NCBI GenBank assembly: GCA_965240325.2
Contig: OZ251233.1
Span: 806,001 to 870,000, forward strand
Source: Rebecca billardiae RCC1528
Lineage: Eukaryota; Protista; Haptophyta
Reading direction: 5' to 3'
Length of the DNA: 64,000 nucleotides
Shown here: positions 16,195-19,442 of the stretch, one piece after another
Layout: every line of letters starts with the position of its first letter
Numbering within the stretch: position 1 is the first letter of the stretch
The notes under the pieces: generated by a model
What the model was told of the DNA's origin: nothing
The model's database searches: none
Seen by the model: the letters and a program-made list of their open reading frames with translations, nothing else
Position numbers and translations under genes: made by a program

Positions 16195-18238
16195 ATGTGG
16201 GCGAAAGTCATCCACGGCATACCCGCCTGCCGCGGCGAGATGGTTCTGCTCATCACGGTGGACCCCGCCGTGATCGAGCGCTTCAGGCGAGCCCTGCGTG
16301 ATGCAGGGCATGCGCACGTCTTGGTCGCCTCGACCCTCCCCGAGGCCACGTCTCTCCTCGACGTGTCGCACACGACCACGCGCCCGATCGAGCACGTGAT
16401 TGCTGATCTCGACTCCACAGAGGTGCGTCGCACGCGTCCGCGATACGCGCGCGTCGTGCCATCGGGCGTGTCCTGACGCGCAGTCTTGCGGCATAACCCT
16501 CGACCGCCGGCGATGCGCCCACTCGCCCTGCACGCAGGCCGATCCATGGACGCTGCGGCTGCTTGGCGAGCTCACTGCGCATGGCGTGCGCACCTTCTCC
16601 GTGATCGCGCCTGTGGTGGGCTCGCACATGGCGCTCACGGGGTTGAAGGGGATGGCGTCGCCGGTCTCAGTCATCGAGAAGAGCCTGGCTCATCCATTCC
16701 TCGTCGACGCCCTCGCCGCTGCGCTGGGAGGTGCGCCTGCGGCGCGGGCTGGTCGCTCCTCTCGCCTCTCGAGCGACAGCTGGTGCAGCGGCAGCTCGGT
16801 CAATGGGCTGGCGCAGCTCTCCGACGCGGACACGTCGCGGCGGAGCGAGAGCAGCAGGCGCAGCATTGCGTCCCGTGCTGAGCCGAGCTTGCGCATGTCA
16901 CCCACGTCCTCATCCACATGCTCGCCAGAGCCATCGCCGCAGCCCGTCTTGCAGTCCACGGCGCCCGCTGCGCGCGAGCGCGAGCTGCCTCGGCTGCCGA
17001 ACGCGCCGGTGTGTGCGAGCATCACCACGGAGGAGAGCAGCGCGGCGCGTGCGCTCGCGGAGGGCGCGGCAATCATGCTGCACCGCCTGCTCGCCCAGGC
17101 AAGCAATGCGTGCCCGCTCTCCCCGGGCGCGGTGGACCTCGACGCCCTGGAGGCAGGACATGCGCACGCGCGGGACGTAGCAGTTACTACTGCTGCTGCT
17201 GCTCCGGCTGCGAGCGACGCGACCGCGCTCATGCTGCGCGCGCTGCTGCGCGTGGCGCCCGAGCTGGTGGCTGAGGACGAGCTGGTTACTGCCACCGCCC
17301 TTGCACGCCGGGCGCTGGCATCGGGGCGGCTCGACCAGGCTCAGTGGCGTGCGCTGCTCCTCGGCGCCCTCATCGTTGCAGCGAAAATTCACAGTGCGCG
17401 CGCGCGCGCGTGCACGCGTACGGCGCGCGCGCGCACGCGCGCGCTCGCTGCGAACATGCCGCTGATGCGCCCGCGCCCGCGCCCGCGTGCCCCCGGCCGC
17501 GCCTCGCGCATCGCAGACGACGCGCGCGTGTACGTCTCCGACTTCGAGTTCGCTCTCCTCCGCGTCGGCTGGGACGTGGGCAGCGGGGAGCTGAGCGTGC
17601 ACGAGCTGGCGGTGCTGAGCGCGCTCCACTTCGACTCGAGGGTGAGCGCGGAGGAGCACGAGGCGCTGCGGAGCGAGCTGTGCGAGCTGCACGGCGAGAG
17701 CGAGCGCAGCCGGTGCAGCGCGCAGGCGCCGGAGGCGCAGCCGACGAAGCGCTCGCGCCCGGTGCCCGTGCCACATGGCAGCGCGCCGCTGACGGCTGGC
17801 TGGGGCTTGCCGGCGTGGCCGCTCAGCGCATGGAACCTACCCATGGATGCGGCGGCTGCGTCCGATGGACTGAGGGCGCCAGCGACGCCCGGGCGCAATG
17901 GCGACTTGGCCCAGTCCAACTCCGCGACGTCGCTGCCCTCGTCGAACACACTCAGCGTGACGGACCTCACTCGCCTACGCCACGGTGCGCGGTCCGAGCC
18001 CGCAGCGCAGGCCATCGCGGTTGGTGGAGAGGCGCCACAGCTGCCCCTTGCGCGCAGCTCGACCAGAGCAGCTCCGGGGCTGTGCGCGAGTCTGACGGGC
18101 ACAGCCTCTACGGCGCTTCCTCCGGAGCAGAACGTGGGCCTGGCCGTGGGGGGAGGCTTGATACGATCGAGTGCGGGGTGCATGCAGCTGCCGCAGGTGG
18201 GGTCACCGCTGGTGACGGTGACAGTTCACTGCTCTTGA
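16195..18238 (+). CDS. Receiver(REC)-like domain plus cyclin-Y/PHO80-like cyclin box protein (exons 16195-16422, 16538-17393, 17517-18238)
   Basis: The spliced N-terminus VLLITVDPAVIERFRRALRDAGHAHVLVASTLPEATSLL...HVIADLD...SVIEKSLAHPFLVDALAAAL follows the REC beta/alpha pattern. QWRALLLGALIVAAKIHNDARVYVSDF...LSVHELAVLSALHFD matches the cyclin-Y box. Both introns are GT-AG and phase-compatible. Confidence 0.75.
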
Positions 18239-18515: not shown

Positions 18516-19442
18516 TCAACACCAGTCCTGGAAAAGGCTCCCGTCGTCGTCATCGTCATCGGACGCGTCGTCGGAATGTGCCACTGCCATCAGGTCGACG
18601 TCGCTGTAGCATGTGCTGCTCTCTCGCCGCGCAGTCATGTGCGCCACCTCGTCATCTCTCTGGAGCCGCGTTGGGCTGCCGCCTCGCGCGTCCACGCACC
18701 GCTCTGCGGCGAGCGCGCAGAGGCGCTGCTCACCGAGCTCTTGGAGAGCGGCGTGGTAGCCGAAGAAGGCCAGCGTGGAGACGTGCAGCTGGAATCCGAG
18801 AAGGCGGGACATGTGCGCCTCGAGCGCGCCGAGCTTGAGCGCGGGCTCGCGCAGCGCCGCGCTCGCCACCGCACCGATCACGCTGCTCGGCGGCGGCTCA
18901 TCCGAGACCATCTTGTGAGCAAGGCTGATAGCCGTGCCAAGCACGGCGCGCCAGTTCACGGGGGTGACGAGCCGTTGGTCGGGGGTGGCGAGAATGCACC
19001 GCTCGATCAGTGCCAGTGCGATGATCGGAGCCGCGTCGTCGAGCCGGAGCTCGGCGCGCAGCAGCTGCAGCGCGCAAAAGCACTCGCCCTCGTCGTACGC
19101 GCACGGTTGGGACGCGGCGCACGATGGCGGCTCAAAGGCCACGCCAGCAGGAGCGCCGTCACACAGGCTGGCGTCGATGTGAATCGAGAGCGCGGCGGCG
19201 ATGCCCGCATCGATCGCGTCATTCGGCTCCTGCGGCAACGTGTTGAGACCGATCGTGCGCGCGATCGCCTTGATCTCAGTGGCCAACGGCGGCATAGAGG
19301 AGCAACGGGGGTGATGCTCGTCGCGCGCATTGGTGATGTCGACGGCGTGCGATGCGCTGGTCGTGCCGGAGGATTTGAGGGGCGTGTGAAGATCTCTCGC
19401 CGAGTCGTAGCCGTGCGAGTTGGCGCACGTCGTCATGATCAT
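18516..19442 (-). CDS. Cyclin-Y/PHO80-like cyclin
   Basis: IIALALIERC...LVTPVNWRAVLGTAISLAHKMVSDE...LGALEAHMSRLLGFQLHVS...FFGYHAAL parallels cyclin Y (VYLER...[22 protein letters not shown]...LERQFLELLQFNINV). Start codon uncertain. Confidence 0.82.
   Translation of the reverse strand: MIMTTCANSHGYDSARDLHTPLKSSGTTSASHAVDITNARDEHHPRCSSMPPLATEIKAIARTIGLNTLPQEPNDAIDAGIAAALSIHIDASLCDGAPAGVAFEPPSCAASQPCAYDEGECFCALQLLRAELRLDDAAPIIALALIERCILATPDQRLVTPVNWRAVLGTAISLAHKMVSDEPPPSSVIGAVASAALREPALKLGALEAHMSRLLGFQLHVSTLAFFGYHAALQELGEQRLCALAAERCVDARGGSPTRLQRDDEVAHMTARRESSTCYSDVDLMAVAHSDDASDDDDDDGSLFQDWC

Follow-up and report, generated by a model that had tools for sequence, protein, structure and literature searches.

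Within a 64,000-nucleotide stretch of the genome of the haptophyte Rebecca billardiae RCC1528 (contig OZ251233.1, here called C16, positions 806001-870000, in a 72-Mb genome of 41 contigs; the whole stretch is referred to as the window), we analyzed a candidate gene on the forward strand at window positions 16195-18238. A preliminary description, made from the letters of the DNA, had read it as a receiver-like domain fused to a cyclin-Y-like box. Our preferred reading, to which we assign a probability of roughly two in three, is that this is a real gene of three exons, encoding a protein of about 600 residues, and that, within a family of receiver-cyclin fusions present in the same genome, no other member has diverged as far. 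The evidence that carries this reading consists of a cyclin box that a profile of the family retrieves from the whole genome in two colinear pieces, of two introns placed as in paralogous genes, and of a domain order common to the family. The parts of the proposed gene model are as follows (window positions).

16195..16422, forward strand: exon 1, 76 codons, with its ATG at 16195 and another in-frame ATG at 16240; forms the N-terminal half of the putative pseudo-receiver (beta1-alpha1-beta2-alpha2-beta3), ending five residues past the beta3 Asp
16423..16537, forward strand: intron 1, 115 nt, phase 0, GTGCGTCGC...GCACGCAG
16538..16747, forward strand: start of exon 2, which presumably encodes the other half of the pseudo-receiver, the C-terminal one (alpha3-beta4-alpha4-beta5-alpha5, including the Lys in IEKS)
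16748..16984, forward strand: Ser-rich low-complexity linker in exon 2, read from the translation
16985..17393, forward strand: end of exon 2, with the EGAAIMLHRLL helix motif and then the first cyclin-box half, ending W-R-x-L-L-x-x-L-I-V-A-A-K-I-H
17394..17516, forward strand: intron 2, 123 nt, phase 1, in frame, stop-free and (GC)n-rich; preceded by A, beginning GTGCGCGCG, ending CATCGCAG and followed by AC GAC
17517..17713, forward strand: start of exon 3, second cyclin-box half, DARVYVSDF...HELAVLSALHFDSRV...ELCELH
17714..18238, forward strand: low-complexity C-terminal tail, in a frame open to 18238, with the TGA stop at 18236-18238

Cyclin box, introns and family membership

For the cyclin box, we sought homology without altering any sequence: the tests of the gene used single exons, or exons 2 and 3 in their natural read-through frame, and the family cyclin profile (A2) was built from unaltered translations of the receiver-cyclin paralogues, with exons as separate rows and with the box of the paralogue on contig C24 included. 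Searched against the whole 72-Mb genome, A2 matched 17237-17404 with its model positions 8-66 (E 0.012) and 17507-17695 with its model positions 60-120 (E 0.023). The two matches are colinear, lie in the same open frame and flank intron 2. When the family cyclin profile was run with hmmsearch among 1059 six-frame decoys from the window, the exon 2 piece reached E 8e-5, its alignment stopping exactly at the exon end, on K-I-H, and the exon 3 piece reached E 1.7e-5; only the studied gene and its convergent neighbour scored at all. The same two were the only sequences retrieved among the window decoys by small profiles of canonical cyclin-Y-like genes (E 0.002-0.005), and comparison of the box with this genome's canonical cyclin-Y-like boxes gave z values of up to 7.0 over shuffled sequences. 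Look-alikes of the box found with the ESM protein language model were cyclin clusters in 87 of 100 cases (score 0.93, 188 of 256 features), one of the clusters being mostly haptophyte. In solved pairs such as cyclin A-CDK2, the cyclin-dependent kinase (CDK) is contacted by the Lys of the A-x-K helix and by the Glu of the E-L-x-x-L helix of the cyclin box, and both are kept in the studied gene, in which IVAAKIH aligns with vvalkah of the family and VHELAVLSAL with qleaavlral. By its sequence, the box shares its ancestry with boxes that Cyclin_N recognises, and the cyclin-Y-like box proposed in the preliminary description is borne out by the genome-wide significance of both A2 matches and by an exon boundary that coincides with the family's own intron.

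The receiver-cyclin architecture occurs at seven loci in this genome, counting the studied gene. The six paralogues were found by a genome search with the copy at C16:1977794-1979110 and are the following (contig positions).

C16:1977794-1979110: intronless, 439 amino acids; Cyclin_N at 13.5 bits, below the cut-off
C27:181513-183072: intronless; Cyclin_N at 16.7 bits, below the cut-off
C33:576901-578615 and C33:581912-583625, reverse strand: intron-bearing, near-identical tandem pair about 5 kb apart (C33A and C33B)
C24:1171983-1173099: Cyclin_N at 31.6 bits (cut-off 23); Response_reg at 16 bits over the whole model
C26:157323-158883, reverse strand: intron in the cyclin box at K-x-H; Response_reg at 53.1 bits (cut-off 30.2)

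Like these six, the studied gene joins a receiver or pseudo-receiver to a low-complexity linker, a G-x-A-x-x-L helix and a cyclin box that ends in LH. It is nevertheless far removed from them, at about 21 bits per half-box as against 83-200 bits among the others. In trees of the half-boxes, it falls outside the canonical cyclin-Y-like clade (support 96/94, second half) and among the receiver-cyclin sequences, on a long branch and with poor resolution.

The introns tie the gene to particular members of the family. Intron 1 shares both its position, five residues past the beta3 Asp, and its phase with the two C33 paralogues, the exon structure of which was confirmed by comparison with the intronless C16 and C27 copies; their counterpart of this intron is 117 nt long instead of 115 nt, and its first nine bases are identical (GTGCGTCGC). 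Intron 2 has its codon, after K-x-H, and its phase 1 in common with C26, C33A and C33B, and the C26 intron also has the same donor (GTGCGCGCG) and the same acceptor context, GCAG followed by AC GAC. The nearby introns of canonical cyclin-Y-like genes are found elsewhere: some follow the Lys immediately, in phase 0, some lie a codon beyond that point, and some precede the helix. Both donors of the studied gene read GTGCG and both acceptors GCAG, as in the homology-proven introns of the genome's other cyclin genes. All seven introns inspected (from loci L007, L008, L014, L051 and L060 and from the studied gene) have GTGCG at their start and CAG at their end, extended to GCAG in six cases; their lengths range over 115-260 nt, and they contain many GC or GT dinucleotide repeats. 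This GTGCG...CAG pattern is a useful splice-site rule for gene modelling in this genome.

The receiver-like domain

The N-terminal domain is the more difficult part of the fusion. The motifs quoted for it in the preliminary description are located as claimed (VLLITVD, VLVASTLPEA and HVIAD in exon 1, IEKS in exon 2), and the pattern that they form, when taken alone, does not rise above chance either in Pfam or in a general profile of receiver (REC) domains. A family receiver profile (A3) was again made from unaltered paralogue translations with exons as separate rows. Aligned with A3 by hhalign, exon 1 matched in register from beta1 to alpha2 over 41 columns (E 0.0015), including the Gly after alpha1. 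In this register, the T-V of LLITVDP stands opposite the D-D of LIIDDDP in C26, and only the third, non-catalytic Asp is kept. The supported alignment ends at residue 56, before the Asp of HVIADLD, which lies five residues before intron 1, as does the FCD Asp in the C33 paralogues. With hmmsearch, exon 1 came first among the 1059 window decoys but without significance (E 0.46). For the remainder of the domain we aligned by eye, in a register that no profile backs for exon 2: there, the beta4 Thr is replaced by Ala or Pro (FSVIAP versus SIVMVT) and Lys-Pro by Lys-Ser (IEKS versus LSKP), and the beta3 Asp and beta5 Lys are present at a CheY-like spacing.

Two further leads came from the level of the fold. 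Among the ESM look-alikes of exon 1 (score 0.91), 37 of 100 were Response_reg and 4 were OKR_DC_1_N, and all named clusters belong to the CheY clan. In a two-chain fold test, the exon 1 peptide, paired with the 70 residues that open exon 2, scored 0.39 (0.43, 0.39 and 0.39 in the separate runs), compared with 0.04 for the best control; at least 75% of contacts agreed between runs, and the predicted local distance difference test (pLDDT) value of the partner was at least 56. The score is graded as weak support. Of 78 solved complexes, 51 reach the mark of this test, as do 2 of 108 mismatched pairs, but those that reach it with values of up to 0.60 are only 5 of the 78 and all 4 passing mismatches. 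Modelled alone by AlphaFold2 (AF2), exon 1 gave the order strand-strand-helix-strand-helix, with a pLDDT of 58.

Descent of the gene as a whole from the family, the intron held in common, the register of exon 1 and these two weak fold-level leads together make it quite probable that the N-terminal alpha/beta domain of about 125 residues is derived from a receiver; considering that the acidic pair has been lost after beta1 and, as read by eye, the Thr/Ser at beta4, it would be a pseudo-receiver. The active site of C26 is canonical and that of the studied gene is not. Since the C26 receiver has a complete site (DDD / D / T / K-P) while other copies go unseen by Pfam, the family, as judged from its sequences, spans the range from a canonical receiver to pseudo-receivers that are invisible to Pfam. 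The receiver-like or pseudo-receiver domain of the preliminary description is supported indirectly: the N-terminal domain of paralogues is a receiver that Pfam recognises (53 bits in C26, 16 in C24), exon 1 matches in register and the fold leads point the same way, but in the studied copy itself neither Pfam nor the general REC profile finds a match.

Several searches weigh against the reading of the gene as a diverged receiver-cyclin fusion. At E values of up to 10, Pfam gave no family at all for exon 1, for exon 2 or for the read-through frame of exons 2 and 3. PF00072 and PF08613, run against the genome in six frames, returned 51 loci and nine places, respectively, the studied locus being absent from both, and the genome-wide search with A3 did not reach it either. 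The receiver half in exon 2 aligned with A3 out of register (hhalign E 0.2) and gave nothing with hmmsearch, and pairwise comparisons of exon 1 with the family receivers were not above shuffles (z up to 1.4). Beyond this genome, two word-based protein searches, one with the whole frame and one with the box only, found no homologue, and a phmmer search with exon 2 up to the box against 1.84 billion representative proteins gave 0 matches, not even to the gene's own protein. Model confidence was low and the fold searches were uninformative: the AF2 single-sequence model of the read-through cyclin region is all-helical, with a pLDDT of 45, and too poor for a meaningful Foldseek search, and for the exon 1 model, at the pLDDT given above, Foldseek and VIA returned no usable match (best Z 4.4, receivers Z 2.7). 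Finally, A2 scores canonical, receiver-less cyclin-Y-like genes above the studied locus, and it is therefore from the introns, the architecture and the weakly resolved trees that membership of the receiver-cyclin clade is deduced.

Other searches returned little. An alignment of canonical cyclin-Y-like genes (A1) matched exon 2 over 21 columns and exon 3 not at all. A general profile of 28 of the genome's own receivers gave the two halves of the N-terminal domain 0.7 and -1.8 bits, and hhalign placed them out of register (E 0.16 and 0.59). A sequence search of the PDB found no cyclin or receiver, with only non-significant Rossmann-type rows for exon 1, an Rfam search of the window found nothing, and a search for RNA runs listed none.

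The alternative that survives best is that the gene is a diverged cyclin-Y-like gene with an N-terminal domain that does not come from a receiver but is an alpha/beta unit of another kind or an extension specific to the lineage, and that both the REC-like pattern and the intron match are coincidental. Such a gene would show what we found with Pfam, with the general profile of own-genome receivers and with the genome-wide family profile, namely no significant REC similarity, together with an undetectable exon 2 half; it would also have a parallel in the convergent neighbour, which is a receiver-less cyclin-Y-like gene, and the GTGCG donor motif is common (4.5 per kb). Against it, exon 1 is in register with the family receiver at E 0.0015, intron 1 agrees with its C33 counterpart in offset from the beta3 Asp, in phase and in its first nine bases, the named ESM look-alikes of exon 1 are all from the CheY clan, and the order of domains is that of the six paralogues. 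On balance, we regard a non-receiver origin as unlikely and retain the receiver-derived reading.

Coding signal, gene model and surroundings

The window is very rich in G and C (62-83% GC in 2-kb steps). Exon 1 is 228 nt long, which makes intron 1 phase 0, and the frame shifts by one across this intron. From 16538, a frame of 566 codons is open and contains the FSVIAP and IEKS peptide, the Ser-rich stretch and the helical W-R-A-L-L-L-G-A-L-I-V-A-A-K-I-H region. Third-position GC is 0.83-0.87 in the frame of exon 1, switches to the next frame past about 16500 and is 0.98 at the start of exon 3. According to a codon-usage log-odds model trained on 3138 codons from receiver and cyclin genes of the same genome, the proposed frame is the best of the six in exon 1, at the start of exon 2 and in each cyclin-box half, and the strongest coding score of the gene belongs to the second of these halves (0.78 bits per codon). 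Within intron 1 no frame is favoured, while the linker scores poorly as coding sequence and the tail weakly. Every exon of the gene is single-copy in the genome.

For the splicing, the evidence is indirect. Introns 16423-16537 and 17394-17516, as drawn in the preliminary description, have in their favour that position and phase are common to the paralogues; on the other side, an alternative intron 1 of 61 nt, with its acceptor at 16483, is likewise frame-keeping, and retention of intron 2 would insert 41 Arg/Ala/Pro-rich residues without breaking the frame. The gene holds eleven GTGCG sites. An extra intron in the linker, starting from the GTGCG at 16731, was considered and provisionally rejected, given that the acceptors at 16779, 16788, 16794, 16942 and 16954, which were checked by eye, all break the frame.

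These ambiguities bear on a second alternative, in which the locus is decaying or mis-modelled: a pseudogene of the family, or a gene with other exon boundaries (a retained intron 2, the 61-nt intron 1 or introns in the linker). Besides the many GTGCG sites and the alternative frame-keeping introns, this would suit the very long branches, the poor coding score of linker and tail, and the absence of the locus's protein from collections that hold another gene of the same or a near-identical organism. The case in point is Logan contig ERR14847148_28308 (2659 nt), from a public run, whose encoded protein is 100% identical to that of the genome's canonical cyclin-Y-like gene on C20; the protein of the studied locus is absent from the collection holding this contig. 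A decaying locus would, however, hardly be expected to keep 566 codons open from 16538, a coding signal that peaks exactly in the two domain regions, intact splice sites at both family-conserved positions and the key residues of the cyclin box, and we consider decay or mis-modelling quite improbable compared with an intact three-exon gene.

Directly downstream of the studied gene lies a convergent neighbour (18516-19442, reverse strand), the two stop codons being 277 bp apart. It is a single open reading frame of 308 codons without a Pfam match. Aligned with A1 by hhalign, it reaches a probability of 77% (E 2e-5, 159 columns), which marks it as a diverged cyclin-Y-like gene without a receiver. 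It also scores 19 bits on the receiver-cyclin box profile and stands on a very long branch among the receiver-cyclin sequences in the trees; a BLASTP comparison with the studied gene gave a weak match or none. The neighbour may be a member of the family that lost its receiver.

A number of leads were followed and set aside. The match of exon 3 on contig C39 was rejected as a paralogue, being a translated microsatellite, and the matches of the tail within its own genome are spurious low-complexity hits. Capture of the gene by a Helitron was likewise rejected: the element ends well before 16195, and the studied gene is single-copy. The C39 region (C39:172936-176094) holds a frame of 939 codons that is ion-channel-like, with ion-transport helices followed by a cyclic-nucleotide-binding-like stretch; this frame is interrupted by a long (GT)n/(CA)n microsatellite, probably an intron, which reads (CV)n or (TH)n and is the source of the spurious match. 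As for the genome's wider content of the two modules, one of its cyclin genes has a box that is 63% identical to a protein of Diacronema lutheri, as fits a haptophyte of the Pavlovophyceae type, and its receiver domains number at least 51 (98 candidates). A single expanded subfamily, marked by the motifs DNQMP and G(M/L)TGDP, accounts for many of these; its members frequently lie in open frames of 600-1000 codons, which suggests a large set of hybrid kinases.

Proposed mechanism and comparison with known systems

In the mechanism that we propose, the protein would consist, in this order, of a pseudo-receiver, a disordered linker rich in Ser, the short helix that the family conserves, a box of the cyclin-Y/PHO80 type and a disordered tail. 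Because the Lys of A-A-K and the Glu of H-E-L are kept, we infer that the box would bind and activate a CDK of the Pho85/CDK5/PCTAIRE type. The Ser-rich linker would likely act as a phospho-regulated tether, and the pseudo-receiver may be a module for docking or dimerisation, possibly with the family member that carries a canonical receiver, and not a phosphoryl acceptor.

Direct phosphorelay input at the studied locus is unlikely, as the acidic pair is missing and the Thr/Ser of beta4 appears to be missing too, and the earlier suggestion of a phosphorelay or clock-type module that gates a cyclin is not supported for this copy, which lacks the acidic pocket and apparently also the hydroxyl residue of beta4. 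That the domain is itself a working phospho-accepting receiver, through which a His-Asp phosphorelay switches the cyclin directly, has very little to recommend it: the Asp at the end of beta3 and the Lys at the end of beta5 do have a CheY-like spacing, the active site of C26 is complete and the receiver domains counted above mean that phosphorelay partners exist, but Thr-Val occupies the place of the acidic pair, with Ala or Pro at beta4 and Lys-Ser by eye, and in CheY-type receivers losing the metal-binding acidic pair abolishes phosphotransfer. For the C26 paralogue, a working phosphorelay input appears plausible.

Compared with cyclin Y and PHO80-like proteins (PF08613, PF00134), the studied gene has the same W-R-x-x-L-L...A-x-K helix, D-x-x-V-x-x-x-D-F loop and E-L-x-x-L-x-x-L-x-F helix, but it lies below Pfam detection, and it differs from cyclin Y and Pho80 in having an N-terminal alpha/beta domain. 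Animal cyclin Y carries an N-terminal Met-Gly myristoylation signal. The studied protein begins M-W-A-K, or M-V-L-L if translation starts from the second ATG, without Met-Gly in either case, and hence it has no myristoylation signal of the animal cyclin Y type. In its degenerate receiver pocket, which presumably serves protein interaction and not phosphotransfer, the gene resembles the plant clock proteins PRR/TOC1. The atypical receiver of Myxococcus FrzS also has a degenerate pocket, and lacks the beta3 Asp (PMC1974792) that the studied gene appears to keep. The output is a cyclin box in the studied gene and a CCT motif or a coiled coil in PRR/TOC1 and FrzS, and the likeness drawn here concerns the pocket. 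With CheY and PF00072, the gene shares the pattern of secondary structure and, as read by eye, the spacing between the Asp of beta3 and the Lys of beta5, and the ESM features of exon 1 are similar to those of N-terminal receiver fragments; it differs in the lack of a significant profile match, in the missing acidic pair and in the apparent loss of the beta4 Thr/Ser. In line with the preliminary description, which knew of no characterised fusion of a receiver with a cyclin, our literature searches found none described, and the receiver-cyclin architecture is a new combination of known modules.

The studied locus is thus best viewed as the seventh and a highly diverged member of the family, and its recovery illustrates that conserved intron positions can bring back diverged family members where sequence searches fail. 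For testing what the family does, this copy is its least informative member, and C26 is the most promising one if a cyclin truly under phosphorelay control is sought. A broader proposal, which we put forward as doubtful, is that the family represents a lineage-specific wiring of the His-Asp phosphorelay into CDK control, in which the studied copy would pair with C26 or dock the same kinase or histidine-containing phosphotransfer protein (HPt), tuning or blocking the input while remaining unphosphorylated itself. If the family works as its architecture suggests, environmental two-component signalling could act on a CDK in a single step, and this would, if true, be a new sensing route to the control of the cell cycle or of nutrient responses in a major group of marine algae.

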